Source of the DNA: Paragordius varius
Lineage: Eukaryota; Animalia; Nematomorpha
DNA: 64,000 bases
Direction: 5' to 3'
Assembly (NCBI GenBank): GCA_964247055.1
Contig: OZ176053.1
Location: 930,001-994,000, forward strand
Position numbers and translations under genes: made by a program
Part shown: in pieces, positions 10,339 through 51,560 of the stretch
Numbering within the stretch: the first letter of the stretch is position 1
How the letters are laid out: every line of letters begins with the position of its first letter
Notes under the pieces: model-generated
Told to the model about the DNA's origin: nothing
Database searches by the model: none
What the model saw: the letters and a program-made list of their open reading frames with translations, nothing else

Positions 10339-13225
10339 CGTAAATCATACGGACAAAACGTAAAATGTAAAAGACAAATGTTTTTTTTAAACAAAACAAC
10401 CTCACTGTTTTAATCCTTGTTTTTCTACATAACCTAATTGATGATAATTGTAAAATTTACATCTTGCCGCCCAAAAAAGTTTTTTTTTATAAAATATGGT
10501 TTAAAAAAGTATGGATGTTTTTATAAAAAATTATCTTTAAAATTTCGATTAATCGAAAAATAGCGAACCAAGATAATAAATATGGTTTTTAAATCATGTA
10601 ATAATTCTGTAATTTTTTACAAGTTTTGCTAATTATTTGCAAAACACTGCACAAAAAAACTAATATATAAGACACATCAGACATTTATGGTTCTACACAA
10701 TTTCTAAAATTTATTCGGTATTTTTAAAAATCTACTGTTTTTGGTAATTTTAAATTTTTTCATAAGCATTTAACAAAGTTGAAGCGTTGAAAGTTGGATG
10801 AAAGTTAAATAATTACATAATATCTTGAAAAAAAAATCATTTCCTAAAATATGACAAGGTGTATCTCACGGTGACAGGAAATTGACTGTAAAGTCTTTTA
10901 ACCTAAATATATAGCATATATTAATATTAAATATTCAGTTTTTATTAATTTTTTGTTATATATAAGAAAATAATTTACTCCAATTTTAAGTGGTTTCGTT
11001 AAAAGATTAGCGGTTACAGAAAACATATCATTCCCGTAAGCATAAATAACTTCACCCTTGAAACCGGGTTGAATAGGTTTCCCATCAAACTCAATATCTA
11101 CATAAATGATAAAATAAATACAGTAAAAATTGAAATTATAATATGGACAAAATGTAACAATATAAAGACAAATATTTTTTTTCTAAAAGACAACCATACT
11201 TTTTAATACCTTAATTTTTTATTTAAAATATATAATTACCACTGTAAAATATATAATTAAACCAAAATACATCTCAAATCAAATTTAAACCATAATATAA
11301 ATTTAAAAAAACAAGTCCTTGAAAAATATATTTGTTTTATAATTTTTGCGTTTTGTTTGTATATTCCTATTTTTACTGTATTTGTGGCAAATTTAGATAA
11401 TCATTTAAAGCACATTAAGGTTCTTTAAGTTTTTTATTATTTTATTTTAATCGAATGTTAGTTTAGCATATCTTATATTTTTGAACAGTAAATAGAGATA
11501 TTTTTAAAATTTGCCTTAACACTTTGCGACAATTTTCCGGCTTAGAGTGAATTTAAATATAAATATATCAAAAGTATACCTATTTTTTAATTTAATTTTT
11601 TTCTAAATTCGAGGTAAAGAAGTATGGCCGCTCTTACTCGTTATGATTTGTCTTTTTACCTTTAATTTTTACTGTAAATTATAGCTTGTCAGCTGTTTAT
11701 AGCAGAGATGGTCAAAACAATTGGCTTTGATGGGCCGCATTTTTTGATTATATCTGGGCATTTATTATAAATTTTATTGAATTTCAAACATAAAAGTATA
11801 GGAAAAACAAAATTTTTATAGTTAGTTGCTGATTGGAAAAACATATTTAGATTTTGTAAAAAAAATTTTTTTTTACTAATTACGATATTTTTGTTAAACA
11901 TCCTATTTGCAATACCCTTATCCTTACAAGTTTAAACTTGAACAAGTCAACAATTAAGATTAAATTTAATCAATTATATAAATAATATATTTATCATATC
12001 ATATACGGGGATAGTATTTGGGAATTTCTCCAAAGCTATCTTGATGTTTTTCAGCAGGAGCATGCCACGATATAAAGGAATCTCCAGGTTTAAGTTCTGC
12101 CAATATTTTGACCACTTCTAAAAATACATTATAAAAATTGAGATATTATACAGACAAAACGTAAAAACTAAAAGGCAACCACAGTTGTCAAACCTTGATT
12201 CTATTAAATATAACTCAAATAGATAGAAATGTCTCTCATTTGTACATGTGAGAAAGATCAAAATTCACAAAAGTATGATTGCCTTTTGTTTTTTAAAAAA
12301 ATATGGTTTTTTTAGATTTTAAATTTATATGTGTCTAATTTCAATTTTTACTGTAAAATAGTATACAGTCACAAATCGGGATATACGCCGTAAAGCCAAT
12401 TAAAAAGTAATTTACAAATTTAAAGATGAGAAACACCCTAATTCCATGTCTTATTGGGCAGGGAAGGTTAAAGTTTTCATTCTTCTAGTAAAGCAATTTA
12501 AGTCTAAACAAAAGAGTCAAAAATCAAAATTTTTTATAAATTTATTTATAAAAACAAGGTATGAAAACGTGAAAAAAATGTTTCTACTATATAAGACCAT
12601 ATTATTATTAAATTTTGATTTTTTTCAACAGATTTTTAAAATATAACCTTTTCTTTAATGGTACTAACTAATGAAAAAACATGTGGAATGGTAACAAACT
12701 CAATTTAAAAATTCACGTCTGTAATCTTATAGGTTGTGGTTATAATGAACAAGGTATCTATCTATCTTAAAAGAAATTTTTGCTTTTCTTTTTTATAAGG
12801 CATACTTGTGTCTGATTTCTCTAAAACAAGCTCTTCCGTAACTTGAACTTTTTGACAAGTGTCGTTTTTTCCCCCACAAACACCACACCCATCTACTACC
12901 AATTCCGAAAATAATTGGTCATCGCATCCAATACTCTAAAACATATTTTTAGTATATCACAAGTAAAAGACAAAAATTATACAGACAATATGCAAAATAT
13001 ATATTTTTTGAATTCCAACCTTGATTTTTTTCTTCTAAATTACAGTAAGAATCGAAATTATATGGACAAAAGGTAAAAACATTAAGACAAATCTTTTTTC
13101 AGACGACAATAACCAAACTTTTTTAACCTTGTTTTTTTTTATTTAAATTTTTTAATTACAATAATATGTAATTGATTGTGTTGGCAATTTACATTCTATA
13201 TCCTACTATTTGGACTACTCATATA

Positions 13226-13614
13226 AGGTATCTAGGGACCCCAGACATATTTAAGTTAATATTTCAAAATTTACTGAAAGATACGGTTCTAATTTAAATT
13301 TATACGTCTATCCTAATATAAATTATATAAAAACACCAAAATATTTAAAAAATTTAGTTTTAAATAGAGTTCCATATCAAACTACTTCAGCACCATTTTT
13401 ATTTTATAACACTTTGCAGAATATCGTGTAAAATAAGTAATATCACGTTTTTTTTAATTGAATCGTTTTATATATTTAGAAGCCTTCATCTTATATAAGT
13501 GCAAACTTTTGCAATTTTTTAAATTTGCTCCATATTAGAAATATTTGCTTTTAAACAGACCTGGGTCCCCCAATTCGAATCGGATGACTGAAATGAATCT
13601 GTTGTATCCAAGTG
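13226..13614 (-). mobile_element. Truncated piggyBac-like non-autonomous element (also 34400-34792)
   Basis: Terminus TTAA-CACTTGGATACAAC matches the element at 20540, and the inner GGGGT..TAGATACC motif is present at the other end. Confidence 0.55.
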
Positions 13615-14114
13615 TTAAATAATGAGTTTTATAAAAAAACATCAAGTGTTTAAAAAGTATAGCAGCAGTCTTTTAAATAAAATATTTGTCTTTATGGTTT
13701 TACGTTTCGTCTGTATAAAATTCCAATTTTTAATTTTGCGTAAATTTTAATACACTAAATTTTATACAATTGGCTGGCCATTTAAACAAATATATCGTCG
13801 ATTATTTTCCTGCAAAAAGGTCCCATCCGAAGCCATTCTTTCGTACAAAACTTCATTTTGATAATTTTCACAGTAAACCATACATTGTGTCGAACCTAAA
13901 AAGTGTATAAATTAATGGTTTATATTATATGATAAAAAAATGTTTTGAGACAACAATATAAAACTATATATATTTTGAGTGATGTTTCAAATAAAATGTC
14001 TTTAAACTAAGGAGAATTCTAACAACAAACACACGTAAAAATAGGTTCCCATTGTTAGTTATTTCATACATTAAAAAAGACATCGTTTAAATGAACTTTA
14101 AATATCATTTAAAG

Positions 14115-14485
14115 CAGGGGTGTTCAACACAAATGGCTTGAAGAGCCAGCCACCTTTTCGACTTTAAAATTCCAAAGAGCCACTTTTTATTTATATATAT
14201 CCAGACATAGGTAACTAATAAATTTATTATATTAACATATAGATGTGCTAATTTTCATATAAAAAAGAAAATAAACAGTATAAATATAATAATGTTTACT
14301 AATTAAATTATATCAATGTGTAAAAAATAAAAATACATGGATATGGTAAACTTATTTCAATTCGATAAGATGACTAGAGTAGACTGTGGCGAATTTAATT
14401 GCCAAAATGTAACCTTTTTTTATTTAATAAAAATAAAAGAAATAAATATTTTTCATTGCATAATTAAATTTTTAATGGGATATTT
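14115..14485. mobile_element. Remnant terminus of the hAT element (rest deleted in copy 1)
   Basis: ATTTAAAG + CAGGGGTGTTCAAC, identical to 35285-35306. Confidence 0.85.
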
Positions 14486-17400
14486 TTTTTTGAAAAAACT
14501 AGAATTAAAAAACATATAATTGATGTCATATTTGATAAAAAGTTGAAAAAGTAGAGCGCTTTTTTGAAAAAATATTTGTCTTTATAATTTTATGTTATGT
14601 CGTATAATTTCATTTTTATAATATACATTTACCAATATAATTACTATTGATATAAAAATGTTACATTTAATACTAATACGCTGAGACAAAAATATTAGAT
14701 TAAAATTATTTAAAATAAATATAATTTTGCAAAATATTAGGTCTATAGTAATATAAAGGTTTAGTAATTTACTCTGCTATACAATTCCTCGTTCTCTCAG
14801 TAATGCCATATTGAGTGTCGCCTTTGCAAGGGGTCCATTCACTCCAATTATCCCAACTAGATTTTAGGTTTCTCAATTGTTTAAGAGTCATACATTTCCC
14901 CTTGACGCAAACCTATTCAAAAAAATAATGTTAAAATTAAAGAAGACAGAAAATTTATTTTCGAAATGACAAACCATGCTTTTTTTCAACTTTGATTTTA
15001 CGTAAATAAACTATTTAATTAGATTAAACTATTATGAAACACAAAATGCAGGATATTTAAGTTTAATAATATGATTTTCTTTGAGAAAAAAAATTGTCTT
15101 AGTTAAAATTAAGGATGACAGTAAAATTTATTTTCGAAATGAGAAACCATACTTTTTTCAACCTTGATTTTACGTAAATAAACTATTTAATTGGATTAAA
15201 CCATTTTGAAACACAAAATGCAGGATATTTAAGTTTAATAATATGATTTTCTTTGAGAAAAAAAATTGTCTTAAGTTTTCATTGTGCAATATAAGAGTTG
15301 ACATGTCGTCTAAATCAGTAAAATTATATGTCACATAAAATGATATTTTAACATGTTTTACACAAAAAAAATAAAAATTAACACACACTTTTCAATATTG
15401 ATTTTCTAAATTATATGGATATGATTGATTCTTTCTTAGTATGCTTGCCATAAAAATTGGCTCATGTTATATATAAATAGTTGAAACTATGCTTTTTGGT
15501 AATATTACATTTTCAAAACATTATTATGCATTTTTGTAAAAAATATAGACATGTCTTAATTCCAATAGAATTCGTTTTTAATAAGCAATTTTAACAAGGT
15601 CAATTTATACATAATTATATAATCGCAACGTAAAAAGACCAATTTACATCTCTACTTCATACTTTGCAATTTAAAAGAGTTATATTTAAAAAAATCAAGT
15701 TAGATTTTAAAAAAATGCTTACCATATTGATTTTACATTTGTCAGTTTTCTTTTTGTTTCATGTTTTGTCCGTATAATGGCGAGTTTTTATATAAAATCT
15801 ATTTATAAGCCTTACAAATGTCCAAACTCATGTGGTATGGTTATAGCGGTATTGAATCTATTGACATGTATGATGGTACAACTCTCCGTTTACATTCTTT
15901 CAAGATCTGCAACGCCTTAAAATGTTTTTATATATATAAATTGATAATATGATATGAAAGTTTTATAATAATTAAATGAAAACAATTGTAGAAAATAAAA
16001 TATATTTATTCATAAGCGATATTAACCAAAAATATATAATCATTATAACAAGAGCATTTAAAAAATATATTTTTTAAAAAAAATTAAAGATTAAAGAACC
16101 ATTCTGCTAAAATTCAGGAATTGTCCAGGAATGCTGCTAGACGCCTTTTTTGAATTTATGTATGTGTGAATACCATCAGGCATAAAAAATACAACTTTAA
16201 GTGGGCGAGAATTTCTTTCGATATCTTTAATATAAATGTTATCCCATCTATCTTAATTTATTCCGTCACACTTAAAACCTTTGTATATTTTATACAAATA
16301 AGAATTAAAGATAATATAATGCTACGCTTTTATATTATCAACAAGTCATCTTTTTGTCGAATTGGTTAGTATATATCCATAATGAAAAAATATTACTTAC
16401 ATACATTGCGATGTCTTTTTTCGTAAATAAATAATTAAATACAAAATATTGCAATTTAGTGATAGTGTTTTAGCGAGTTAATATACAACATATATTACGA
16501 TATTTTAATATATTTAGTATAGTTACTATCTATATTCATCTAGTGAAACTAACTCAATTTTAAATTGAAAAAGGCTGAGTCTCCGCCTTATAAAAAAATG
16601 AACCAAATTCCTAACCTTAGCCCATAAAGTCAAAAGCCTTAAATATTTGCCAGGGTATCATGATGTACTTTTTATATAAATATGATATATTGGGTAGATG
16701 TGCGTATATAAGTCTATAAAATAAAATTTTTACCGCATCTTAAAAAGTTTTCAATTTAATGCCATAACATATGATTACCCTAAACATATATCTTAATTGA
16801 TAAATTTAAGTAATGTGTTGATTTATTATAAGTTTAAACTTAAGGAGATATTTAGTTGGGATAATTTTTCGGAATTTTAAATTTAAACCTTCCATTAAAA
16901 ACGTTTGGACTAATCGATTTTCTAGACAATACATAAAAGTAACTGAAAAGACAGTTCCAATTCAAATTGCTTTTATATTCAAAAGTATTTATAAATAGCC
17001 AAAAAAGATTATACTAAAGTATTTCGACGCCAATTTTATTTATGTTTTTTGCGAAATATCATGATTTGATTTTAACGCTAAATTTAAAGTTTATTTTTTA
17101 TCAAAAAGATACAAACATTATCAATAGTGATTTTTGGATTATTTTAATTAGCTAATGCACACATGTCATGATAGCCAAAAATTTTTCTTGAGGTTTATAC
17201 ATTAAATAGGCAGTATCAAGATATTAAATAAATCTTTTTTTATATTTTGCTTAATAGTTATAATGTAAACCCTTCCACTGGTTTTGATTTTGTTCCATAT
17301 TTAAAAAATATTAGATTTTAAACTGCCACTACTACTTCCTAATTTAATATATGATTGAAATTAATGTATTGTATCCAAGGGTTATATTATTAAAATATGT

Positions 17401-28289: not shown

Positions 28290-28920
28290 TTTAGGGGCCG
28301 ACTCTTTTATGGGATAAATAAATCCTCCTTCACACGTTTGGAGAAAACAACTCTCAACATATCAAGAGTTGATTTCCCCAAAGGAGGAAATGTTCTCCCA
28401 CGAGAGAGTCTGCCCTGTAGAATGAGAGTTTGTTACCCATCCAAATCATCCCCGAGTAACACGCAGGTTGTTGCATTGAGGACCCGACCAAGGCTCGTTG
28501 TCCATCGTGGCTCACAAGCTCCGCAAAGGACATCTTCCCACAAAGCCAATCCACACCTAAACATTACATTTACCTCGAAATACGTAGCATCTCACGCCTG
28601 GCTCTTGTCCATATATCCTCCCATCGATCGGCCACTTCCAAGTCCCGCGCATTCGATCTTTCCAAGGTTCTGGTCAAAGCTCCGCAATGAACGCTTTTTT
28701 TTCATAGTTTGTGCCAATCAACCTAAATAATACATTTACCTCGTAATAGAAGCATTCGTTTGGCCCTCGCAATCTCTGGTTTCTAGTCTTCATTCACGTT
28801 CCCATCCCTTTCCGTATAAGAAGAAGGCTTAAGTCCTTCAAAAATACGTTTCCAACCATCCTTCCCATATAAATTTATTTAAAATTGCGATGATAGGCGC
28901 TCAAATCACTCAATACATAT
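28290..28920. other. Second copy of the unexplained GC-richer island
   Basis: Near-identical to 7320-7940, with indels and stops. Confidence 0.5.
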
Positions 28921-31506: not shown

Positions 31507-31990
31507 CGTAAATCATACGGACAAAACGTAAAATGTAAAAGACAAATGGTTTTTTTAAACAAAACAACCTCACTGTTTTAATCCTTGTTTTTCTACATAA
31601 CCTATAAAATTTACATCTCGCCGCCCAAAAAAGTTTTTTTTATATAAAATATGGTTTAAAAAAGTATGGATGTTTTTAAAAAAAATTATCTTTAAAATTT
31701 CGATTAATCGAAAAATAGCGAACCAAGATAATAAATATGGTTTTTAAATCGTGTAATAGTTATTCTGTAATTTGTTACAACAAGTTTTGCTAATTATTTG
31801 CTAAACACCAAAAACTAATATATAAGACATATCAGACATTTATGGTTCTACACAATTTCTAAAATTTATTCGGTATTTTTAAAAATCTACTGTTTTTGGT
31901 AATTTTACATTTTTTCATAAGCATTTAACAAAGTTGAAGCGTTGAAAGTTGGATGAAAGTTAAATAATTACATAATTTCTTGAAAAAAAA

Positions 31991-34900
31991 TCATTTCCTA
32001 AAATATGACAAGGTGTATCTCACGGTGACAGGAAATTGACTGTAAAGTCTTTTAACCTAAATATATAGCATAAATTAAATATTAAATATTCCGTTTTTAT
32101 TAATTATTTGATATAAGAAAAAAAATTTACTCCAATTTTAAGTGGTTTCGTTAAAAGATTAGCGGTTACAGAAAACATATCATTCCCGTAAGCATAAATA
32201 ACTTCACCCTTGAAACCGGGTTGAATAGGTTTCCCATCAAACTCAATATCTACATAAATGATAAAATAAATACAGTAAAAATTGAAATTATAATATGGAC
32301 AAAATGTAACAATATAAAGACAAATATTTTTTTTCTAAAAGACAACCATACTTTTTAATACCTTAATTTTTCTTATATAAAATATATAATTACCACTGTA
32401 AAATATATAATTAAACCAAAATACATCTCAAATCAAATTTAAACCATAATATAAATTTAAAAAAACAAGATTTAAAAAATATGGTTGTCCTTAAAAAAAA
32501 TATATTTGTTTTATAATTTTTGCGTTTTGTTCTATATATTCCTATTTTTACTGTATTTGTGGCAAATTTAGATAATCATTTAAAGCACATTAAGGTTCTT
32601 TAAGTTTTTTATCATTTTATTTTAATCGAATGTTAGTTTAGCATATCTTATATTTTTGAACAGTAAATAGAGATATTTTTAAAATTTGCCTTAACACTTT
32701 GCGACAATTTTCCGGCTTAGAGTGAATTTAAATATAAATATATCAAAAGTATACCTATTTTTTAATTTAATTTTTTTCTAAATTCGAGGTAAAGAAGTAT
32801 GGCCGCTCTTACTCGTTATGATTTGTTTTTTTACCTTTAATTTTTACTGTAAATTATAGCTTGTCAGCTGTTTATAGCAGAGATGGTCAAAACAAATGGC
32901 TTTGATGGGCCGCATTTTTTGATTATAACTGGGCATTTATTATATATTTTATTGAATTTCAAACATAAGAGTATAAGAAAAACATAATTTTTATAGTTAG
33001 TTGCCGATTGGAAAAACATATTTAGATTTTGTAAAAAAAATTTTTTTACTAATTACGATATTTTTGTTAAACATCCTATTTGCAATACCCTTATCCTTAC
33101 AAGTTTAAACTTGAACAAGTCAACAATTAAGATTAAATTTAATCAATTATATAAATAATATATATTTATCATATCATATACGGGGATAGTATTTGGGAAT
33201 TTCTCCAAAGCTATCTTGATGTTTTTCAGCAGGAGCATGCCACGATATAAAGGAATCTCCAGGTTTAAGTTCTGCCAATATCTTTACCACTTCTAAAAAT
33301 ACATTATAAAAATTGAGATATTATACAGACAAAACGTAAAAACTAAAAAGCAACCACAGTTGTCAAACCTTGATTCTATTAAATATATGTCAAATAGATA
33401 GAAATGTCTCTCATTTGTACATGTGAGAAAGATCAAAATTCACAAAAGTATGATTGCCTTTTGTTTTTAAAAAAAAAATATGGTTTTTTTAGATTTTAAA
33501 TTTATATGTGTCTAATTTCAATTTTTACTGTAAAATAGTATACAGTCACAAATCGGGATATACGCCGTAAAGCCAATTAAAAAGTAATTTAAAAATTTAA
33601 AGATGAGAAACACCCTAATTCCATGTCTTATTGGGCAGGGAAGGTTAAAGTTTTCATTCTTATGGTAAAGCAATTTAAGTCTAAACAAAAGAGTCAAAAA
33701 TCAAAATTTTTTATAAATTTATTTATAAAAACAAGGTATGAAAACGTGAAAAAAATGTTTCTACTATATAAGACCATATTATTACTAAAATATGATTTTT
33801 TTTCAACAGATTTTTAAAATATAACATTTTCTTTAATGGTACTAAGTAATTGAATATATCATAAAATGGTAAACTCTATGTTAAAATTCACGTTGTCTGT
33901 AACCTTATAGGTTGTGGTTATAATGAACAAGGTATCTATCTTAAAAGAAATTTTTGCTTTTCTTTTTTATAAGGCATACTTGTGTCTGTTTTCTCTAAAA
34001 CAAGGTCTTGCTTAACTTGAACTTTTTCACAAGTGTCGTTTTTTCCCCCACAAACACCACACCCATCTACTACCAATTCCGAAAATAATTGGTCATCGCA
34101 TCCAATACTCTAAAACATATTTTTAGTATATCACAGTAAAAGACAAAAATTATACAGACAATATGTAAAATATATATTTTTTGAATTCCAACCTTGATTT
34201 TTTTTCTTCTAAATTACAGTAAGAATCGAAATTATATGGACAAAAGGTAAAAACATTAAGACAAATCTTTTTTTCAGACGACAATAACGAAACTTTTTAA
34301 CCTTGATTTTTTTCTATTTAAATTTTTTAATTACAATAATATGTAATTGATTGTGTTGGCAATTTACATTCTATATCCTACTATTTGGACTACTCATATA
34401 AGGTATCTAGGGACCCCAGACATATTTAAGTTAATATTTCAAAATTTACTGAAAGATACGGTTCTAATTTAAATTTATACGTCTATCCTAATAAAAATTA
34501 TATAAAAACACCAAAATATTTTAAAAAATTTAGTTTTAAAAAGAGTTCCATATCAAACTACTTCAGCACCATTTTTTATTTTATAACACTTTGCAGAATA
34601 TCGTGTAAAATAAGTAATATCACGTTTTTTAATTGAATCGTTTTGTATATTTCGACGCATCCATCTTATATAAGTAAAATTTTTTGCAATAGTTTCAATT
34701 TGCTCCATATTTTTAGAAATATTTGCTTTTAAACAGACCTGGGTCGCCCAATTCGAATCGGATGACTGAAATGAATCTGTTGTATCCAAGTGTTAAATAA
34801 TGAGCTTTATAAAAAAACATCAAGTGTTTAAAAAGTATAGCAGCAGTCTTTTAAATAAAATATTTGTCTTTATGGTTTTACGTTTCGTCTGTATAAAATT

Positions 34901-37900
34901 CCAATTTTTACTTTTGGGTAAATTTTAATACACTAAATTATATACAATTGGCTGGCCATTTAAACAAATATATCGTCGATTATTCTCCTGCAAAAAGGTT
35001 CCGTCCGAAGCCATTCTTTCGTAAAGAACTTCGTTTTGATAATTTTCACAGTACACCATACATTGTGTTGAACCTAAAAAGTGTATAAATTAATGGTTTA
35101 TATTATATGATAAAAAAATGTTTTGAGACAACAATATAAAACTATATATATTTTGAGTGATGTTTCAAATAAAATGTCTTTAAACAAAGGAGAATTTCAA
35201 CTACATACAAACGTAAAAATAGGTTCCCATTGTTAGTTATTTCATACATTAAAAAAGACATCGTTTAAATGAACTTTAAATATCATTTAAAGCAGGGGTG
35301 TTCAACACAAATGGCTTGAAGAGCCACCTTTTCGACTTTAAAATTCCAAAGAGCCACTTTTTATTTATATATATCCAGACATAGGTAACTAATAAATTTA
35401 TTATATTAACATATAGACGTGCTAATTTTCATATAAAAAAGAAAATAAACAGTATAAATATAATAATGTTTACTAATTAAATTATATCAATGTGTAAAAA
35501 ATAAAAATACATGGATATGGTAAACTTATTTCAATTCGATAAGATGACTAGAGTAGACTGTGGCGAATTTAATTGCCAAAATGTAACCTTTTTTTATTTA
35601 ATAAAAATAAAAGAAATAAATATTTTTCATTGCATAATTAAATTTTTAATGGGATATTTGTTTTGTAATTTTTTTGCTTAATTTATTCAGATCAATATCA
35701 ATATCTTATACAGCACATCTCAATTCATTCTCCAAGTTTTCATCAGTTAATAAAGAACGTGAAAGAGATTCTGTGTATTTCATTTAAAAAAAACTTTTAC
35801 AAAGATAAGTGGACCCAAAAAAATTAGGAAATTTATCAAACGTTATATATTTTTTATAAAATTCAATTTTATTTGTTTGCCCAAATAATAATTTTAATCA
35901 ATATTGGATTGCAAATCTAGTAATTCTATTTGTAAATTAATAGGAGCGTTGATAGCTTCAACGTAGAATGGACAACAAAAAAATCAAATATTTTTTCATA
36001 TTTTGTCATATCCCCGTATCGATTATTAAAAGCTTTTGATAATATGTTAATTTGATATATTTTGAAAAATCGTTAGTTTTACCAGCTTTAATCTATTCGA
36101 TTCTGGAAAATGTTCAGCATTATTTTTTTTAAATGGCATTCAAATAACGTCAATTTTTTACAAAACGCTTTAATATGGTTATTCGCATCAACAATTAATT
36201 ATCTTGCTTTTTCAAGGATTCATCTGATTAATTTAGTTTTTCGGTAATATCTACGGAAGAGCATAAATCTGACAATTAATCTTCATTGGTTAATTCCTCT
36301 ACCAAATTTCTGCAATAGAAAAATATTTATTTTTAATAAATAATAAAACCTGTTTAAACATTTCCCTCGACTACGCCACCTTACATTTGAAAAAATTTAA
36401 GATCTCCATATATTCTGAATGAATTTCTTTTGATAACTCCTTAAACTGCTTATGCTTCAAAGCATGAGATTATATAAAATTAACTACTTCAATAACAACG
36501 GTCATAACATTGTCCATTGTCAGAGCATGTGCGCAGAGATATTCACGGTGAATCATGCAATGCATTATATATATGGTCAATATTAATACCATCGGATTAC
36601 ATCTTACTAAACAATAATTTCACGGTTCCCTTGTTTTTTCCCATCATAGCTGGTGCACCATCTGTTGTCAAACAAGATAGCGCCCTCATGTTTAAATTAT
36701 TGTCCTCAATACATTTTAAAATTGCATGAAACATATCTCCCTTAGTTGTATTTTCATCGGAAGTAAGCCTAACATATCTTCTGTTATATTAAAAAAATTC
36801 ATCTATCCCTCGAATAATGACTACCAATTGTGATATGTTGCTTATATCTGTGCTTTCATCAAAAGACAAGGAAAACGCCACAAAATTTTGAATTCTTTCT
36901 TGGTTAAATTTCTTCTGCGATGTCTGTAATTCGTCGACACATAGTATTGCGCGAAAGACTTATACTGGATATTAATTCAACTTTATTAGGCAAAACACAT
37001 TTTATAATTTCCAGTACGCATTCCTTTACAAACTCACCATCAGAGTAAGGCTTGATTTTTTTGGCGATTAAATTGGCAACAATATAACTTGCTTTTACTA
37101 TCGGATAAGGTTGCGTGAATGTGTTGGTTGGAGATTTTTAATATTTTTTAAGAATCTAATTTTATTATTTTCATTTCTGTAGTCATATTAATAAAATCCA
37201 AATGCATGGTATTGGCATGTCTTTTAAAATTATATTCGCGAAACCCGTTTGTCGTAAATTTGCAAATAAGGCACTCCGCTTTGTTGAAAATTTGAGTAAA
37301 CCCATATTTTAATTTTTAGTCGGGATTGTATAGTTACTTTTTTAAATCTATGCATATTGAAAGCTAAATAAATTATTTTAAATACCTTTTTTGCAAGTAA
37401 TTTAATGTTTCAATAAACCCAAATTATAATTCCTAGTATTGGTATGAAAGCTAAATAAATTATTATAAATACCTATTTTTTGCAAGTTATTTAATTTTTC
37501 AATGGACCTTAATTATAATTCCCAGTATTGGTATGAAAGCTAAATAAATTATTTTAAATACCTATTTTTTGCAAGTATTTCAATGTGTCAATGGACCCAA
37601 ATTATAATTCCTATTGGTATCAGAGCTAAATAAATTATTTTAAATCCCTATTTTTTGCAAGCATTTTAATGTTTCAATGGACCCAAATTATAATTCCAGT
37701 TGTGGTATGAAAGCTAAATAAATTATTTTAAATCCCATTTTTTGCAAGTAATTTTTAATTTAGAGTGAAAGTTATCATCTTGAAGTTGGAAATAACATGC
37801 AAGAAAAAATGTGTTTTATAAATGATCAAATGAATGCGATGATAGATATTTATAATAAAGAATTTTATTAGTTTCTAAAAATAATTTAAATGTCAAAATA

Positions 37901-40900
37901 AAATACATATAAAAAATTTTTTTTCAAAATTTTCAAAGATCCACTCAAAATTTTCAATGAGCCACTAGTGGCCCGCGAGTACCCTGTTGGACACCCCTGA
38001 TTTAAAGCATATCACAAGTATTTTGAAGATACCTTCATATTAAGTTAATTTTTTATTGTAAACAAAAAAACCACTTCGGCTAAAATAAGGGATTCATCCT
38101 CAAATATTTAACAGATCTAGAAATACGGTTACCATAAATGTAATTTTGTTAAAATAAAAAAAAAATTTAAAAAAATTTAATGCCCTTGCTCACATTTTTA
38201 CGACCAGAAAAAGTCTAACCTCAAACCAGTTTCGGTTCTGAAAATAAATATACAATTATCAAAAAAATTAATTAAAACTAAATAAAGTTACGATTACTTT
38301 TAGGATCATATCTTATCTTTTGGTTTTGACGACATATTTCATCCATTGACAAATCGCGCGTCTAAAAAGGAAATAAGAAATTATCCACCAAAAAGTTACA
38401 ATATATTGTAATAAAATATGGAATTAAACTTTTGGATTCTTGCAGAGTTTGGTTTGGATTCCGTTTCCAATGCAAGGATGTACTCCGTATGTGCTAAAAT
38501 AATAAACATATTCCAATAAAAATTGAATGTATACAGACAAAAATTTAAATGTTAACAACAAACTACTTTATTAAAAAGACAACCCTACTTTTTAAAACCA
38601 TATTTTTTTGAAAAAACTAGAATTAAAAAACATATAATTGATGTCATATTTGATAAAAAGTTGAAAAAGTAGAGCGCTTTTTTGAAAAAATATTTGTCTT
38701 TATAATTTTATGTTATGTCGTATAATTTCATTTTTATAATATACATTTACCAATATAATTACTATTGATATAAAAATGTTACATTTAATACTAATACGCT
38801 GAGACAAAAATATTAGATTAAAATTATTTAAAATAAATATAATTTTGCAAAATATTAGGTCTATAGTAATATAAAGGTTTAGTAATTTACTCTGCTATAC
38901 AATTCCTCGTTCTCTCAGTAATGCCATATTGAGTGTCGCCTTTGCAAGGGGTCCATTCACTCCAATTATCCCAACTAGATTTTAGGTTTCTCAATTGTTT
39001 AAGAGTCATACATTTCCCCTTTACGCAAACCTATTCAAAAAAATGCTAAAAATAAAGAAGACAGAAAATTTATTCTTGAAATGAGAAACCATACTTTTTT
39101 CAAGCTTGATTTTACGTAAATAAACTATTTAATTGGATTAAACCATTTTGAAACACAAAATAAAATAGGATTTTTAACAAATTAAACAAAGAGGTGGCTA
39201 ACCAACAAAAAATTTATATAAACGCATTAAACAAAGGGTATAAATATTATCACCTCAGTCAAACAAACTATTGCAACAAAAAAAATATATTTATAAAGGC
39301 CCAATATTTAATTGCACTGGGATAGAAATCAATGAAAATGATAATATAATTAACAGATGGAAACAATAATCCACAGATCTCTACATTGACTCAAACGTTA
39401 CGCATTCGCCCTAAAACAACTCCCCATACATGAACCACCCAACCTAAAAGTGAGGTCCTCAAGGCAATTAAATTCCTTCCTCACAACAAAGCCTTGGAAT
39501 ATGACGAAATCCCTATAGAAATAGTAAACTACAATCCTATAAAAACACTTGACTTATCAAAAAATATTTCAATCCGGCATCTGGGAAAACAATTGGTCTA
39601 AATCTCTACTTACCGATTCACAAAAAAGGTAATCCTAAAATATGCAGCAAATACTGAACAATTGCGCTTATATCGCAAATCAAAAATATTATATTGTATT
39701 ATAGATTATTATCCAAGTTGAGAATACATCTCACAAAATCAAACTGGTTTTCGGAAGGGAACAGGCTGCAGAGACCATATCTGTAACCTTAGGTTTATCA
39801 TGGAAAAATATATTGAACACAACAAACCTTTTTATCTCTGTTTTATTGATTACACAAAAGACTTTGACAAACTCATTCACAACACACTATGGGAAGTTTT
39901 GGAAAAAATTTGTACAACACCTGGTCTCATTCAAATAACGAAATCTTTATAAAGCAACACTGAGGCATGTATTCAAACAGTACACGGTTCCTCTGATTCG
40001 TTTCCTACAAATAGGGGCGTGCCCGTCAAGGGTGCATCCTTTTACCCCTATTATTCAATATCTACACCGAACATATCACGTCCAAGTTAGATACTCAGAA
40101 TCATATCGGTTTAAAACTACATCCTGGAAAAATTACATCTTGAGAGCCAATCTCATATACTTAAAATTAACGTGGCAAACAAAGTCATATCTAATGACGC
40201 CAGATGCTGAATCAAAATGGTAACACTTTATAGAAACACTAGACAACTATATATATTTAGGAGTCGAAATTAATAATAATAAAAATACAACACCTGAATT
40301 TAAACAAGACCAGCCATAGACAGGGCCAAAAGGAAATCATATATCGCAAGATATGGTCTTCACGAAAAATAACCAAAACTACCAAATAAAAATTTTAAAT
40401 ACAATAATATTCCCAATCGCAACCTATGGATAGGAAAGCTGGGTATACAAAAACTCTGAACAAAAAAATATTCAAGTTTTGAGCAAACCTAATGCTTCTT
40501 GGCAAAAAATGGACGGACAAACTCGCTAATGAATGGATACGCAAATGGAGATTAGGCTACTTATACCACGTCATCTGCAACAACAAATTGGGGACAATCA
40601 TGCTGGGCCTGGTAGAAGGTAAACGTACAAGAGGCAGACCCAGAAAAAAAATGGTCAAAACAATTAACGAATTTCACCCACCTTATAATCTCCAATCTGA
40701 TTAATTAATCCTCAGACAGATCAGCCTACAGAAAATTTATCCATGAAATCCAGCAAAAAGTTGAATATTAACTACGCTGACATTCATTCATTCATGTAGA
40801 AAAAAATGTCTTTTAATTTTTCATTTTGTCCGTATAATTTATATTTACTGATAACTATAACAAACACTCAGTTTTACCCCTTTTGGTTTTTTTTGTGGAT

Positions 40901-43900
40901 CGAGAGACGATGTAGCTATATCACAGGGAACATTGTTGAGATATTCGGGTATAACGCTCCTTCCGCCATCGGATCGCGTGCAATATAAGCGTTCGCATGT
41001 CGTCTAAATCAGTAAAGTATTGTGTCACTTAAAAAAACTAAGGCTTTGCTCCTATAACTTAAAATTTAACAGATTTTCTATATTAATCTTAAAAAATATG
41101 ATTTTTTTCTTTGTAAGTTTCTATAATAAGAATGGCTTATGTAAAAATGGCTAATTTTATGAACTATACTCTTTTTAACTATACATCTTCAATCGTATAT
41201 TATGTATTAAGTAATATTAAAAATTATAAAAGTGCCTTATTTCCAATTTACGAATTAAATCTCCCTATATGAAATTTATTAATTAGCAATTTTAACCAAG
41301 AGAGTCTATTAATATATAATCATATAATCGTAACATAAAAAAGTTATTTAACCATATTCAAATCTATAGTGGCCGGCTGCCCAGATACATCGTTGCACCA
41401 ATTGTTATACTTGTAAATGTTCCATGTAGGAGGTCTCCCAATCGCCGGAATTTTAAAACCTGCTGGCTTGTCTCTAAGACATTTGGCTTGGGGAAAGCTT
41501 TACCATTATACAAGGAACAAATAATTAGTGAACAATAAAAATTAAAATGATAAAGGCCAAACTCTAAAACGTAACGACAATGATTTTTTTAAAAAAATCT
41601 ATACATTTTTTTAAACTTGATTTTTCAAAAATAAACTCATTGTTTTTAATAAAGTATGGAATAGATGTGAATTAATAACATGATGAATATGTTATTAAAT
41701 TTTCTCGTAGAATATAAATGAGATTTAAAAAATGGTTGTCTTCTAATTTACGTTTTGTCTGTTCAAGTTTTACTGCACATATTTAATAAAAATGAGTCTT
41801 TAGGCTTCATCTCCCCACAAATTAAAATTAAAATAAAAAAGCTGTGCAAAAAGAGGTTTAACTTTCGAATATAATTTTAAAGCCTTAAAAAACATTGCGT
41901 CCAAAATCTGGTAATGTTAAAAAATAATTTGATAATACATCCATATATATATATATATATATATATTCGATATGAAAAAGTATCATGATATAATGGTGCT
42001 CTAGCCCTTATGAGTGATATTAGAAAGTGATACATTTTTGTGATAAGTGCTCCATATCAGAAAATGAATAATTTTTTGGGGAAAAGCCATGTGCTTCATT
42101 CGAAATTATTCGCTCTAAAATAGGTTAGTTTTCTTTATATAAACGCAAAAATGCCGAAATAGCAAGATATAAATATAAGCTTTCTGCTAAAAATAAATTT
42201 GAAAATTGAATATTTTCAAAAATTTAATTTTTAGCAAATGGTTGAGAGGCAACGTGAAAACAGTTTAAAAACGCTTAAGATATTATAAAAACATCTTTTC
42301 TATAGATAATGATCCTTAACGTTTCTATAGCTTCAGAATTATAAATTAAAGGTTCGCTTGCCTTAAAATTATAATGATTTTTGTAAAAAAACACATATAT
42401 TTAACAAAGATTTGAAAACGACGTTATATTAATCATTATGATGGATAGAAATGTTTATTATTGAATTATATAGAAAGTCTTTTACATCATTTAAATAGTA
42501 GGAAACATACTTTGCTAAAAATTTAATTCTTTAATGAAGCAATTTTTTAAATATTTTAACGGATACCGACATTTAGTATACATTTAAAATTTATATCCCA
42601 CAATCTGGTCATCTTAGCCTATATTTTTAAAAAATTAGCCCATTATAGGAAAGAGAATTTGGGATTTTTGGACCCACATCTAAAAATTAAATTTTACAAA
42701 TATTATTTTGGTTTTTATATGTAGTTTATGATGTCTTTTAATGATATTTTTTGAAATGCAACATTTAGCTTTTACCAAAAATATTTGATTTAAATAAGTG
42801 CTCAAATTTTGCCATTTTCTGATATGGACCACTTAACACATAGTGTGCGAATAACCAAAACCAATTTGATAATCTTGATACATTTTCTTATCAAAATTTA
42901 TATATTTTATATTATTATTTTAGACATTATTTAAACGCTCTAATCGCGCAAGAATTCAAGCTCAAGAATTTATTACATATATTTGGTGGCCACACTCTCA
43001 AATTTTTTTAAAAATAATTATTTTTATATAACAAAGCGGTGCCAAGTATAAGGTGTTTACTTATTTGTTAAATTCGATTGTTGATTAGATAAATTTATAA
43101 TACAGCTTTTAATTTATTAATAGGTGGTTTGGATAAGATCGTTTGAGAAAGCATTCATGAGCGTGATTGTGACCGATTTCAAATTAACAGTAAAAAAATT
43201 TAACACATGTTCACCTTATGATGCATATAATTAAATTTAATTTAAAATATACCATATGCACTTCAAAAGTGTCCTGGGTTAAGTTGGTCCTTAATTTTTG
43301 AAATTTGATTTAACCATAATTTGTGCATGCATTTTTTTTCTTATTTTTTAACCAACTCTTTTCTTTATTTATTTCTATATTTATTCATTTAAATATAAAA
43401 ATTTCTATTCAACCACTTTTTTGCTTCAAACTAATTTTTTTCCAATTTAACATTATTATTAACTTTTAAATGCTAAAATTGCAAATAATAACCCAGAAAA
43501 CTATTTTTTTATTAAGTGTTAAAATCTTATAAATATCCAAATTATTTTAAAAAATAAAGATATACGGTTTTTCAATGGTTAATGCTTGATTGATTTAAAA
43601 TTTATTTTAAATAATAAAAAATAGGCTAACAATAAAATAGATGAATGATATAGGATTCGATTGATAAAAGTTAAAAACAAAACAAAAAAGTTAAAGGACC
43701 AACTTGAAGTGTTCAAAGACCAACTTAAAGTGTTCAAGGACCAACTTTAAGTGTTTAAAAAACAATGAAATGTTCTAAAACTTGAAGTGTTTAAAAACAC
43801 TATTGAAGTCAAATGGTATATTTATTTTAATAATCAAAACTTTATAAAAAGTAAGTGCTTAACCACATAATCTATGTGGCTGAGTTATATTTACTTCTAA

Positions 43901-46900
43901 TAAGTATTTACCGAAGGTAAGTCCCAATCGATTTGGAACTACACACGGACCATCTATAAATATCAGGAGCTGAGGCACCATAATGCATAATGCCTCCTTT
44001 GTCTTTGCATTCGTTTTCCATATCGTGGGGCGCACCCATTCTAAATGTTATTAAGTAAAATACAGTAAAAAGAAAATATTCAGACAAATCGTAAAATTTT
44101 AAAGATTTTTTTTTCAAAAGACAATCAGATTTTAAAAATATATGGGTGTTTAGGCTTAACTCCTTATTTTTGGCTAGCGAAATATGGAATTTGATTTACA
44201 TTGTTAATACACTGAATTATATAAAATTCAAGTTTTAAATAAATATGTGAAAAAATCAATCTTAAAAAAGTATGGTTTTATTTTCAAAAATAATTCTTTT
44301 AATTTATTGTCGGTATAATTTCATTTCATACTCTAACATTGGTACTCAAACCGCAGCCACGGGTCGTGTGCCGCCCTAAAAGGGCTTTCTATGGCCCTCT
44401 ATTATTATAATTAAATCATTTTATGTATTTATTTTGAATTCAAATATAAAGGCAAATATGTCAAACATTTTATCGGTATTGATAAATATATTTGGCGACT
44501 CTTAAATTATTTTTTAAAGAAGATGATTTATTAAGCCTTACAAATGGCCCAATTCATGTGGTATGGAAATACCGGCATTCAATCTATTGGGATGTATGAT
44601 GGTGCAACTCTCCGTCCCACACATTCTATCAAGTTGTGCCACGCCTTGAAACATAATATTAAATTATTTTGTTTTAATTTTGTTTTTTAGCCAAGTGGAA
44701 ACATAAAAAAGATTATAATAGATAGAGGATTTCATATATATGTGAAAAGATAATATGGCGAGATTTATAAGAATTAAATAATATTTGAGAGGATTTTAAT
44801 AATTTTACGGTGCTATTCAATTTATAAAACTGAGAATAATCTTGTAAAATATAATCTAGCTAACTCTTGTAAACTAACCGTACATAGTTTTTAAACCCAG
44901 AAAATGTGATAACCTCTAAAATAATACATAATCCATTAAATTTTTTTAAAAATTTAGCTCTTACAGATTAGAAGATCACATCTATCTCTTAATTATGTAA
45001 TAGCTTTTAAAATATTTCTTTAAATCAAAAAATAGATAAAGAAAGCGCTAAAATTACCCACAACAGATTCTTGCCGCCATTTACTAGAAATATTATAAAA
45101 TATACATTATTTTTTATGAAAAATCATATAAAAAATATTCAAAGTTTACTCGGATATAAGAATGGATACATCTTCCCCATTTTCCATGCGAGATGGCAAA
45201 GTATGGGCGCAAAATTTGTGTAACTCATCCTTTGTCCGTATCTCTGGTCCGTTCTAACGATATAAAAAGATTTTTGTACACAGAGATAAAACTATATCTA
45301 AGGTAACTTTAGTTAAAATTTAGTTAATTATTTTACATAAGTAGTTCTTCCAACAACGTACAGATATACTTCGGTATCGAGACTAGGGTCATTCAAAACT
45401 TGATTGATCTGTTCACATTAAATATATAAAACATAGAAAAGAGAAGTGACAGATTTGAAATAGAGTTATTTAAGACAAATGTAATATAAGAGTCTAAACT
45501 TAAGAAGAGCTGTCAAATTGGTAACATTGTCAACCATATTTTTTTGGTCCCTTTATTTTTTATAGCGCCAATATAAAGTACAGATTGTAAAACAGTGGTT
45601 GGAGTTTGATTAAATACTTAGCACTATTTTTACAATACCTTGATATAGAAGAATAAAAAATAAGAATCGTCTCAATTAAAATTGTTTAATTGCAAATTAA
45701 GTTTTGGACTTTTACTTTTGCACTTTGTTTATTTTCAGTGTATTTATTTCAAAATTTATTTTTTTAAAAAATATGAGAATAAACGTTATATTCCAACAAT
45801 TTCCAATCGCGATCATCGTAATAATTGCCATCGGTGTATATGCGAGCTTCAATGATTGCTGGAACATCGGCTAAATCTTTTGACAAACGATATAAAAAAT
45901 ATGTTTGTGAAATTTTTTTTAAATTATAAAAACAAATTTAAAAGTACAATTAATTACATTTGATAAACAAAAACGATATCTCTCGTGTCTGTACTGTGAT
46001 TAAAAATTATCTATTTATATTTTTATTAAATACTCTATATATTAAAAGAGCTAAAAATATGTTTTTTATATTTAGATTTCATTTTCATATTTTATCGTTA
46101 TGATTCAATATTTCTAAATTACAAGCTATATATGTTTTGCGGTAGAAATTAAAATACAGATGCAAAAATTAAAAGGCAATATTTTTTCAAAAGGTAAACA
46201 TAATTTTCAAGCCTTGATTTTTACAAGTGTAAAATCTATAATTAGTAACAAAATTTCCAACACAGCTTCCACAAAAATAACCTGATGAAACTTATTACAA
46301 AATGTATCATGATTATTATGGTGCTTTTGGTTTTGGCCCTTACGAGTAATTAGAAAGTTATTTATACTTTTGGGTGAGTGCTCCATATCATACACAGTAT
46401 GAATTTTAATGGTTGCTTATTTCACACTATATAGCCATTTGCTACACAGGAATGTATGGAAAAATAATGGATAAAATTGTTTATTCCACATTTTGTTGTT
46501 ATTCCATACCTTACTGTGTTGCAAATTGACCTACTATAGGGTAAAATAAAAGCAACCATGCAAAACCATATTTTCAAAATATTAATGTGGGCGCAGAAAG
46601 TCCCAATTTTTTTTGTTCGGTTCTTTTGAAATGAAAACAAAAATGCCGTGATTGTAAAATAAATATTTATATACCATTGGCACTTTAAGAGTGTTCTTTA
46701 ACACTTCAAGTTTTGGTCTTTAAAATCTTTAAATTTGGATTTAACAATACATTTCGCATGTATTTTTTATTTTATTTTTTAACTTGTTTCAAACTAAGCT
46801 TTTTTCATTTTAACAAAATTATTAACTTTAAAATGTTTTCAATGAAAAATTGTAAATAATAAACCGAAAAATTTATATTTTTTTAATTACGTGTTAAAAT

Positions 46901-48043
46901 CTTATAAAATAGCAAAATAATTTAAAAAAATTAGTTAAAATATACGGTTTCTCAATGAATAAAAGTGATATTGATTCAAAATTTATGTTAAATAATAGAA
47001 AATAGTTTAATAACGATGAATAGATAAATAATTTACGATTTGATTGATAAAGTTAAAAATAAAACAAAAAAGTCAAAGGACCACTTTAAATTTTCAAGGA
47101 CTAACTTGAAAAGTTCAAGGGCCAAACAAGGACCAAAGAGTTCAAGGACCAAGAAGTGTTCAAAGACTAATTTGAAATGTTGGACACTCTTTAATTGCAA
47201 GTGGTATATGCTAATTTTTTTTATCCACTAAAAGTATTTTTTAAAAACTGCATATTTCAAAAATTTAATTTTTAGCCAAATTATGTTTAAGCATACTTCA
47301 AACTATTTTGACGCTTATGAAAACGGTATAAAAACACACTTAATCCATACGATGGTGCTAAACATTCCTATTACCTCAGAATTTTTAAAAAGATCATTGG
47401 TCTTCAAATTTATGTTAAATAAAAATTCTGTTTTTTCTAAAAATGCACCAAAATTTTTAGGCAAAAGATTTAGATTACCACACGAATTCAGCATAAAAAA
47501 TTATATATAAAAAGTGGTCTTAAAGTGTTTTTATACCGGTACATCATGCCTCAAAATAGTTTGAAGTACACTTGAAAGTTGAAAAAGTATATTATTTAGT
47601 AAAAATAGTTTTAGTTAATATGAAAATTTGGCATATATTTAAAATTTTTATCGCACGATCCCGGCATTTTTTGCGTTTATTTAAAAAGAACTGGGACTTT
47701 CAGCGCCTACATCATTTAATTTTTTTGAAAATATGGTTTTGCTTTTAATTGTAGTTTATATAATATTTAAATCGTATTTTTTGGAATGAAGCCCCTAGCT
47801 TTCACCAAAAAATTTAGTTTAAAAATGTGTGCATATTTTGTTTCTCATAATATCCGATTTCGGACGCAATGTAATGAATTATATATAAAAAAACAGGTTA
47901 AAAAAGTTGTTTTTTAAAAAAATTGTTTTTAGAATTTTAATTTTGTCTGTAATATTTACTCTAAATATTAATATACCTGGCGTGGTTCCTACTACCCCAA
48001 AAATAAAAAGGTAAAGAATAGCAGTAGTAGCAATTAAATTCAT
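31991..48043 (-). CDS. ADAMTS-like secreted metalloprotease (M12B), 17 exons, 559 aa: signal peptide-catalytic-disintegrin-like-TSP1-Cys-rich-spacer, no prodomain
   Basis: Manual GT-AG, phase-consistent exons: 48043-47977, 45870-45785, 45408-45337, 45253-45150, 45083-45058, 44644-44542, 44040-43912, 41497-41353, 41003-40878, 39030-38891, 38493-38430, 38361-38298, 35073-34946, 34109-33980, 33292-33182, 32249-32131, 32056-31991 (1680 nt). Motifs: HELGHLMGAPHD, Met-turn GIM, WDNWSEWTPC..RTRNC, GCD..DGCGVCGG..TC, spacer LLTKPLKIGV..PVTVRY. Confidence 0.88.
35293..37999 (-). mobile_element. Full-length decayed hAT DNA transposon (SPIN/Charlie, GTF2IRD2-like transposase pseudogene ~35700-37330) in ADAMTS intron 12
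   Basis: 14-bp TIRs CAGGGGTGTTCAAC / GTTGGACACCCCTG and 8-bp TSD ATTTAAAG (35285-92, 38000-07). Minus frames CLIC..YNFKRH, ASYIVANLIAKKIKPYSDGEFVKEC, SLSRNT, FSLSFDESTD, TTDGAPAM, HCMIHRE, NVRWRSRG, with stops and frameshifts. Confidence 0.93.
37350..37760. repeat. ~88-bp minisatellite (~5 copies) in the hAT subterminal region
   Basis: TGAAAGCTAAATAAATT-type motif recurs at ~37358, 37444, 37533, 37620 and 37707. Confidence 0.85.
39161..40795 (+). mobile_element. 5'-truncated decayed RTE-clade LINE in ADAMTS intron 9 (antisense to the host gene)
   Basis: Frames LPIHKKGNPKICSKY, QTGFRKGTGCRDHICNLRFIMEKY..FIDYTKDFD, GVRQGCIL.PLLFNIY, MLGLVEGKRTRGRPR. (CATT)n 3' tail at 40781-40795. Confidence 0.9.
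41990..42860. mobile_element. TIR element family with AGTGCTCCATATC termini (other members 46318-46560 and 52260-53120)
   Basis: Inverted GTG(C/G)TCCATATC(A)GAAAATG ends. A ~80-bp terminal sequence GTGCTTTT..GGCCCTTA.GAGT is shared among copies. Confidence 0.6.
43240..43830. repeat. Dispersed ~550-bp repeat with a ~21-bp AAGGACCAACTT..AAGTGTTC internal array (second copy ~46670-47210)
   Basis: Colinear similarity between two ADAMTS introns. Confidence 0.65.
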
Positions 48044-49399
48044 GATAAGTTTAGAGGCAATAAAAATAATTAATTAAGATTTTTATACTAAAATTATATT
48101 AATTATTACTTCCTTATATACGATGGGATATATATATATATATTCTGATTATATAAAAATCTTAAATTTATTTAATATTAGTGTACTTTTAGAACAAAAG
48201 CTGAATAAATAAGAATCAATTCCCTATAATTTAATTTACGAGAGTAAGCATGAATCATTAAAATTATAAGACATCAATTTTAGCACCTGCACTGGTGAGT
48301 AAATTTGAGACTAAAATAGAATTTATTATATGTACCCAATGTTTTTTTATATGTAACATTCTGAGAATTTTCCCTATTATGCACATTTATAATTTATTTT
48401 GTCGTCTGGAATTCTCATATGAATCACTTGGAAAAATTTGTAATATGTTTTATTTGAAAAAATTGGCACCTGTAAATTTATTTTATAACTGAGTGTTGTT
48501 AATTAATAAAGCTGTGTATATACAATATATAAAATATAATCTATTTTAAGCGATAGGACAAGATTTTAACATAAATAATATGGAATAGTGAAAGCAGGAT
48601 TGGCACCCACACATAATTGGTATGTCTCATCAACAAAAAGAAGAGACTAATATATAATATCTCCATAGACAGAAAATAATTTGGTAACTTAACTTTGTAA
48701 ACTTAAATAGTATATTTATTATTTAAAAATTTAATAACCCCTTTCTTATATTAGGTACTCCTAGTATTCTTATTGATCGATATATTTTTTTTTCCATAAA
48801 GAAAATATTTTTTTAGTAGAAATGATAAATGCTGAGGTTAATCTTATTTAGTTCCCTTTCAAACTTTGGATGTTTTAGCCCCCAATATTGTGATGAAAAT
48901 GCTTTTATAATCCAGGTATAATAGTTTAATTTAATACGTTTCTATCATTTATTTTAGCTGATAAATCAGAAAATGATGGTGATTGAGATTTTTAGGATTA
49001 TCTTAATTTCCTAGTAATTTTTCGGGATCCTATGACAATTCCTTATTCTAAATTATGATCACCATGAACGCACACCGCATCGTATATTAATATTAGAATC
49101 ATCAAATTTACCTGCCATAATATCAATATGTTAATTTCACTCATAATCATAAAATACATTATATTATGAATGCAATCTTTAAATTTTATAGTGACATAAG
49201 GCGGTTGTTAAAATATACATAGTTGGATTTTGATAAATAAAATGTCAAAATAAAACCGCAACATGCATGTTAACTAATTTAATATATATAGTTATCGATG
49301 TAAAACCAAAAAATAATTTTCTTAAAAATTATAAAAACCGCAGACCATAGTATTTTTTACCTGTAATCAATGTATCAAATTACAGTAATTAAAAACAAT

Positions 49400-51301: not shown

Positions 51302-51351
51302 TAGATTATATGGGAGGTTTTCCTATTATTTAATTACTCAAAATTTTATTA

Positions 51352-51560
51352 CAGTCATGTATTCTTTATTTTATCCAAAATTTCTTTTGTTAAATGGGTA
51401 TTTGGTTATAAATGGAAAAACAAGAGCTCTATGGTATTAACAATATCATATTCATCAAAGTATGAGAATTACCATAGAGCTCTTGTTTTTCCATTCTTTA
51501 CCAAATATTAATACTCATTTAACAAAATAAAATAAATATTTGATAAAATAAAGGATTGAC
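51352..51560. mobile_element. Palindromic MITE of the CAGTCATGTA family
   Basis: Foldback GAAAAACAAGAGCTCTATGG / CCATAGAGCTCTTGTTTTTC. Confidence 0.7.

Follow-up and report, generated by a model that had tools for sequence, protein, structure and literature searches.

An ADAMTS protease gene that appears to have no prodomain lies on the minus strand of the hairworm DNA analysed here, a stretch of 64,000 nucleotides from Paragordius varius contig OZ176053.1 (G000:C4:930001-994000; hereafter the window), taken from an assembly of 110.6 Mb in 44 contigs with ~26% GC. From 48043 to 31991, 17 exons joined by coordinates give 1680 nt, or 559 aa, with GT-AG at all introns and the sole stop at the end. 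The 559-aa model, the translations of exons 1 and 2 and their in-phase joining, all proposed in a preliminary description of this DNA, were thereby reproduced. (Searches were done exon by exon, and the joined protein served only for checks of frame, motifs and codons.) The gene model is well supported at the level of the DNA, and a predicted splice between exon 1 and exon 2 would place the signal peptide directly ahead of the M12B catalytic domain. On balance, it seems probable that this is an intact gene of a shortened ADAMTS subfamily expanded in hairworms, that an ancestral two-exon prodomain and a basic stretch were lost from it, and that the enzyme folds without a propeptide in cis and is controlled by means other than zymogen activation.

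How would such a protease be made and restrained? The layout of the subfamily would run from a signal peptide through M12B, disintegrin-like, one four-cysteine thrombospondin type 1 (TSP1), cysteine-rich and spacer-like regions to the stop. The ancestor would have had a prodomain of ~150 aa on two exons between phase-1 introns. With both exons lost in frame, and with the basic stretch that opens the next exon gone as well, the mRNA would join exon 1 to exon 2, and signal peptidase alone would set the mature N-terminus (about Thr20), leaving a protease of ~540 aa and ~61 kDa. Folding would proceed without a cis-acting propeptide, as in ADAMTS13, and the substrates would presumably be extracellular-matrix or basement-membrane proteins, either the worm's own or those of its arthropod host. 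Restraint would come from the time and place of expression, a closed conformation or inhibitors rather than from zymogen cleavage. The architecture would imply secretion in an already active form, and a role as an effector in the host is conceivable at most.

In nearly all described ADAM and ADAMTS proteases, a prodomain either obstructs the active site or serves as a folding chaperone, ADAMTS13 being the known near-exception. Comparison of the window gene with its prodomain-bearing relatives in the hairworm Gordionus, as a matched pair, could show how an M12B domain manages to fold and remain under control when the prodomain is missing. A literature search, whose coverage left out most subscription papers, turned up no account of ADAMTS genes in hairworms and none of a naturally prodomain-less ADAMTS.

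The only close relatives of the window gene in public protein sets come from Gordionus sp. m RMFG-2023. A profile of exon-7 homologues led to CAK9299177.1 and CAK9303644.1, and CAK9299177.1 in turn to about a dozen members of a short ADAMTS family (such as CAK9290282.1, CAK9299177.1, CAK9290034.1 and CAK9290021.1), which are unnamed or automatically named "ADAMTS-like" models. These share with the window gene the exon borders of the catalytic domain, including a micro-exon, a TSP1 repeat without the CSxSCG cysteine pattern and a stop after the spacer-like region; identity to the two closest relatives is 36-55% per exon (25% in exon 3). Unlike it, they have a ~150-aa prodomain encoded by two exons, and their strand 1 is preceded by a basic stretch of the KKAK/KKAR type. 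The strand-1 Glu stands at residue 169-192 in CAK9290282, CAK9290034, CAK9290021 and other Gordionus relatives, versus residue 30 in the window protein, which also has no convertase-type site (RxxR, KR or RR) in its first 120 aa. At two Gordionus loci, the order is a 49-nt signal exon, a phase-1 intron, prodomain exons of ~290 and ~150 nt, a phase-1 intron and the exon with the basic stretch and strand 1. The signal exon ends in phase 1, like window exon 1, and since both prodomain exons lie between phase-1 introns, their removal gives the structure of the window gene with the frame intact. Window exon 2 is ~14 residues shorter than its Gordionus counterpart, the basic stretch being gone. In a tree built from six exon blocks (247 columns), a clade with reduced TSP1 repeats that includes the window gene and prodomain-bearing members has 71% support, and because the window gene sits among prodomain-bearing members, the loss is the derived state. 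The absence of a prodomain is well supported at the DNA level, and loss of a two-exon cassette is its probable mechanism, the Gordionus genes being relatives whose strict orthology is unproven.

Is the extra N-terminal part of the Gordionus proteins really a prodomain? In an Atlas model, it resembles ADAM/ADAMTS prodomains (template-modelling [TM] score 0.57-0.61 to models of ADAM32, testase-7 and ADAMTS10), and its feature score with a PF01562 cluster is 0.94; Pfam PF01562 itself gave no match to it. The likeness rests on the Atlas model, because a separate structure prediction was poor (predicted local distance difference test, pLDDT, 43), with the ADAM17 prodomain matched only at Z 3.6-3.9. 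In a model of CAK9290282.1, residues 5-126 form an all-beta domain, and the start of the M12B fold, at residue 168-170, aligns with the first mature residues of ADAMTS13, ADAMTS1 and ADAMTS5 (Z 9.2-9.8); the best solved-structure match of the Gordionus relative is ADAMTS13 (6qig, E=1.2e-19). Since no solved M12B relative was found with profile A2 or with the first exon of the contig-2 cluster described below as queries, the identity of strand 1 rests on the Gordionus alignment and the fold. (The public model CAK9299177.1 is itself 5'-truncated: its signal exon, two prodomain exons and exons 2-4 are unannotated upstream, at L021 1280-9500 of Gordionus OX940785.2.)

In the window gene, the corresponding DNA has little room for a prodomain. 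The preliminary description saw only repeats in intron 1 and no prodomain in the protein, and both statements held up well against the DNA. Repeats found elsewhere in the source DNA examined match 1646 of the 2106 nt, and the unmatched pieces of at least 60 nt (128, 73 and 139 nt, or 340 nt in total) have 21-22% GC versus 40.5% in the exons. Depth in a DNA run is 58-1200x over 46165-47937, versus about 1-27x (mostly 2-7x) in the bins that cover exons 2-7, apart from two bins of intron 6 where it is higher. The longest stop-free minus-strand frame in 45871-53560 is 91 aa, 85% of it repeat, and there is no frame of 95 aa or more; the first prodomain exon of Gordionus, at ~290 nt, cannot be accommodated by any stop-free frame in intron 1 or upstream. 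The prodomain pieces of this genome's canonical ADAMTS genes and two Gordionus prodomain profiles had no match in 45871-53560, nor did the Gordionus profile match anywhere in the whole genome (best E=2.66). Prodomain exons between 47976 and 45871, which by the preliminary description's own account would speak against it, did not turn up in the frame, repeat or profile scans. Exon 1 encodes the most hydrophobic stretch of the protein (the top hydropathy windows are all at aa 3-20, and there is no transmembrane anchor), and its donor scores 7.5, versus 3.2-9.2 for the remaining donors of the gene. It is the sole signal-exon-like candidate on the minus strand in 45871-53560, up to the next gene at 53568; the background rate of such candidates is about 0.09 per 2.2 kb, or 0.32 per 7.7 kb, of this genome's DNA.

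The catalytic machinery is complete, as had been proposed. The HExxHxxGxxHD zinc motif with its catalytic Glu occupies aa 148-159, divided between exons 6 and 7, and the Met-turn GIMH, invariant in the family alignment, aa 169-172. Glu30, Asp103 and Asp205 are presumably calcium ligands. There are 24 cysteines, an even number in each domain (6 catalytic, 6 disintegrin-like, 4 TSP1, 8 cysteine-rich). Catalytic and disintegrin-like domains normally carry eight each (PMC5296908), so the six and six found here suggest losses by pairs; the disintegrin-like and TSP1 domains are each down one cysteine pair. The M12B/reprolysin assignment comes through the Gordionus relatives, which correspond exon for exon (PF01421 E=2.6e-14; fold like ADAMTS13, ADAMTS1 and ADAMTS5). 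The Reprolysin profile had no match to the window exons taken singly, and Pfam on single exons was mostly blank, with weak matches only to TSP_1 and ADAMTS_CR_3 (Table 1). The putative spacer, ~114 cysteine-free residues, is assigned by position and by C-terminal similarity to the Gordionus relatives, in which the Pfam spacer profile had no match. A complete M12B domain with an intact zinc motif sets the protein apart from the ADAMTS-like (ADAMTSL/papilin) class. The M12B domain and most ADAMTS features are present and the prodomain is missing; the predicted activity is zinc-dependent proteolysis of matrix substrates.

The same genome holds a second group of genes with this arrangement. In a tandem cluster on contig 2 (G000:C2:1.30-1.42 Mb, L001-L004), the Met, the signal peptide, a ~19-aa linker, strand 1 and helix A are all encoded by one 198-nt exon, with an in-frame stop 15 nt upstream. 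As the signal peptide and strand 1 share an exon, there is no intron at these genes to hide a prodomain. The first exon is present in 12 open copies of 88-100% identity, and the one copy that was read from end to end has an intact zinc motif. The cluster is like the window gene in that an M12B domain whose zinc motif is intact begins, with strand 1, directly after the signal peptide, and unlike it in the single-exon start, a canonical CSKSCG TSP1 repeat and further C-terminal TSP1-like repeats. It falls outside the window gene's clade in the tree (71-87% support), and together with the canonical TSP1 repeat, this makes a second, independent prodomain loss probable. Such a repeated loss would point to selection favouring ready-to-act proteases in a parasite of arthropod tissue. 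When a contig-2 exon was used as the query, word searches gave nothing, or unrelated Cys repeats only. (At the 3' end of each contig-2 copy, the opposite strand also has a frame of 192 aa, at 1101-1676 in L001, with no Pfam match.)

Other ADAMTS-like genes in the genome have retained the prodomain (PF01562 at C3:4.93 Mb, E=1.6e-6), and further prodomain-like exons lie at C4:8.04 Mb, C3:8.09 Mb and C1:7.20 Mb. The survey of paralogues and relatives that the preliminary description had called for thus found the prodomain kept in Gordionus and missing in the 12-copy cluster. (Paralogues on C3, C6 and C8 were left out of the paralogue comparison.) Paralogue B (L009 2258-2592, G000:C4:6.69 Mb) has exon-2 phases as in the window gene, but retains the basic stretch before strand 1; its nearest signal-like open reading frame (ORF), ~220 nt upstream, reaches a stop codon ahead of a donor, and the 2.4 kb examined showed no prodomain exon. 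In paralogue C (L020 4924-5277, G000:C4:0.67 Mb), Asn replaces the conserved Gly of the zinc motif, and exons 4 and 5 are fused. For paralogue A (C4:0.84-0.85 Mb) and paralogue C, the sequence examined around them yielded no 5' end.

Among known proteases, ADAMTS4 ends after the spacer and has a single TSP1 repeat. The likeness to ADAMTS4 drawn in the preliminary description holds for this end point and not beyond it, since ADAMTS4 has a full prodomain, furin excision of which is needed for activity (PMC5296908), and eight-cysteine catalytic and disintegrin-like domains versus 6 and 6 here. MIG-17 of C. elegans is likewise a shortened invertebrate ADAMTS, which acts on basement membrane (PMC4856095); unlike the window gene, it keeps a prodomain, removed autoproteolytically, and has a PLAC domain. 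The nearest precedent is ADAMTS13: its very short propeptide is dispensable, with no effect on secretion or on activity, and the latency of its protease domain is allosteric, set by conformation (PMC8275829). ADAMTS13 differs in keeping a furin-cleaved propeptide and long TSP1/CUB extensions, and it is reported to be vertebrate-specific (PMC8275829), so that no orthology is implied. Several ADAMTS propeptides are secretion chaperones rather than latency devices (PMC8275829, PMC5296908), and folding is therefore as much at issue as control.

Several observations weigh against an intact, prodomain-less enzyme. ADAMTS9 and ADAMTS17 are not secreted without their propeptides (PMC8275829, PMC5296908). 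The residue directly ahead of the first zinc His is Pro, as against Ala or Gly in the Gordionus relatives. The odds of a chance signal-like exon within 2.2 kb are about 9%. In the tree, the node that unites the window gene with the Gordionus family is supported at only 41%. Prodomain-like exons elsewhere in this genome, L017 among them, also escape the prodomain profile, so that its blank result is only moderate evidence, the lack of physical room being the stronger argument. None of the exons of the gene was covered by a contig from three probable RNA runs that carry the same species label, a result that is uninformative, since it came without a positive control. The signal of selection described below comes from exons 10-17 only and may predate the loss of the prodomain.

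The need of ADAMTS9 and ADAMTS17 for their propeptides in secretion could also be answered in trans: the cis prodomain would be lost and a separately encoded prodomain protein would chaperone the enzyme, inhibit it, or both. That two lineages in this genome appear prodomain-less would fit such an arrangement, which we nonetheless think rather unlikely. In a broader form, held with similar reserve, hairworms might have split the ADAMTS zymogen at least once into prodomain-less proteases (the window gene and the 12-copy cluster, by independent losses) and stand-alone prodomain proteins that would fold or restrain them in trans, possibly for use in the arthropod host.

Could the gene instead have been disabled recently? 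Three extra copies of it, all broken, lie nearby (window 10839-15915, C4:885-890 kb and C4:905-910 kb). Their exon-6 copy has a stop, and exons 1-5, 7 and 8 were not found in the DNA examined. The first of these had been cited as evidence of a duplicating family, whereas it is a 5'-truncated, broken fragment, one of three, and not an intact paralogue. The exon-6 remnant is ~80-83% identical to the gene versus 94-100% for exons 10-17, and by this pattern each copy is a chimera in which an older duplicate is joined to a 3' part that was homogenised recently. A tandem duplication of ~21 kb joins window 3980-15047 and 25041-39161 at 92-97% identity; its unit includes an intronless 412-aa ORF for a rhodopsin-type G-protein-coupled receptor (9100-10338 and 30268-31506; PF00001 E=4.8e-7), tail-to-tail with the ADAMTS 3' end. 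(A 31-bp satellite precedes each unit, at 1-3400 and 20240-23750.) Over exons 10-17, the gene is separated from each of the three broken copies by 10-11 silent changes and 5 replacements (pN/pS 0.12-0.13, p about 1e-4, in comparisons that are not independent), which shows purifying selection on the 3' half of the gene, and says nothing on the age of the prodomain loss. A deletion in the repeat-rich intron that took the prodomain exons, leaving a product that no longer folds, would agree with the broken neighbours, the repeat-filled intron 1 and the blank from the RNA runs. It is nevertheless an unlikely explanation, given 17 open exons with good splice sites, the loss of the basic stretch from exon 2 as a second, fitting change, the pN/pS of about 0.12 and the open first exons retained by the 12 prodomain-less contig-2 copies.

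The Pro before the first zinc His, common to the sister copies, could distort the active-site helix, in which case the product might be a secreted but weak or non-catalytic matrix binder for which a latency domain is unneeded. This is doubtful, since the zinc motif keeps all three His, its Glu and the Asp that comes next, the Met-turn is conserved as well, and exon 7 is 55% identical to the intact Gordionus relatives. Least likely of all is a hidden prodomain, either divided among small exons of intron 1 that evolve fast or located upstream of 48043 together with a different signal exon, for although exons of this gene are as short as 26 nt, prodomains diverge fast enough for profiles to miss L017 and ~2-3 kb of unique sequence lies upstream, the unique pieces of intron 1 are few and low in GC, no long open frame or other signal-exon candidate precedes the next gene, and the basic site in exon 2 is lost.

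Table 1. Exons of the prodomain-less ADAMTS gene, its first intron and the broken copy within the window (window coordinates).
Feature	Position	Strand	Content	Remarks
Exon 1	47977..48043	-	Met, signal peptide (aa 1-19, likely cleavage after Gly19) and TTP; phase-1 donor	67 nt
Intron 1	45871..47976	-	2106 nt, 78% dispersed repeats; site of two prodomain exons in Gordionus relatives	
Exon 2	45785..45870	-	Short linker, strand 1 (Glu30) and start of helix A of M12B domain; without basic stretch of Gordionus and paralogue B	Starts in phase 1
Exon 3	45337..45408	-	End of helix A, strand 2	
Exon 4	45150..45253	-	Helix B (Cys90), strand 3; 52-53% identity to two closest Gordionus relatives	
Exon 5	45058..45083	-	26-nt micro-exon; counterpart micro-exon in Gordionus locus	
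Exon 6	44542..44644	-	Through HELGH of zinc motif; Pro precedes first His	
Exon 7	43912..44040	-	Third zinc His and Asp, Met-turn, last helix; 55% identity to Gordionus relatives	
Exon 8	41353..41497	-	End of catalytic domain (Cys202, Asp205), start of disintegrin-like domain	
Exon 9	40878..41003	-	Disintegrin-like domain	
Exon 10	38891..39030	-	End of disintegrin-like domain, start of TSP1 repeat (WxxWxxW)	TSP_1 E=0.012
Exon 11	38430..38493	-	Remainder of four-cysteine TSP1 repeat	
Exon 12	38298..38361	-	Start of cysteine-rich domain	
Exon 13	34946..35073	-	Cysteine-rich domain	
Exon 14	33980..34109	-	End of cysteine-rich domain, start of spacer-like region	ADAMTS_CR_3 E=0.0016
Exon 15	33182..33292	-	Spacer-like region	Assigned by position
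Exon 16	32131..32249	-	Spacer-like region	Assigned by position
Exon 17	31991..32056	-	End of spacer-like region and stop; same end point in Gordionus relatives	
Copy 1, broken partial duplicate	10839..15915	-	Without exons 1-5, 7, 8, 11 and 12	Exon-6 copy with stop codon and gap; exon 9 shortened; exons 10 and 13-17 near-identical to gene

An 18th exon at 38237-38202 and longer versions of exons 9 and 10 were tried in the gene model and dropped, because they break the frame. Two of the introns carry recognisable elements: in intron 12 (window 35275-37990), one that looks hAT-like by eye, bearing terminal inverted repeats and decayed frames that resemble transposase, and in intron 9 (about 39300-40800), a fragment resembling a long interspersed nuclear element on the reverse strand, also judged by eye. 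Upstream of the gene, window 53568-57112 holds a DnaJ-like gene on the plus strand (PF01556) and, on the minus strand, an intronless 611-aa ORF for an M14 carboxypeptidase (PF00246 E=1.6e-75) with hydrophobic stretches at both ends.

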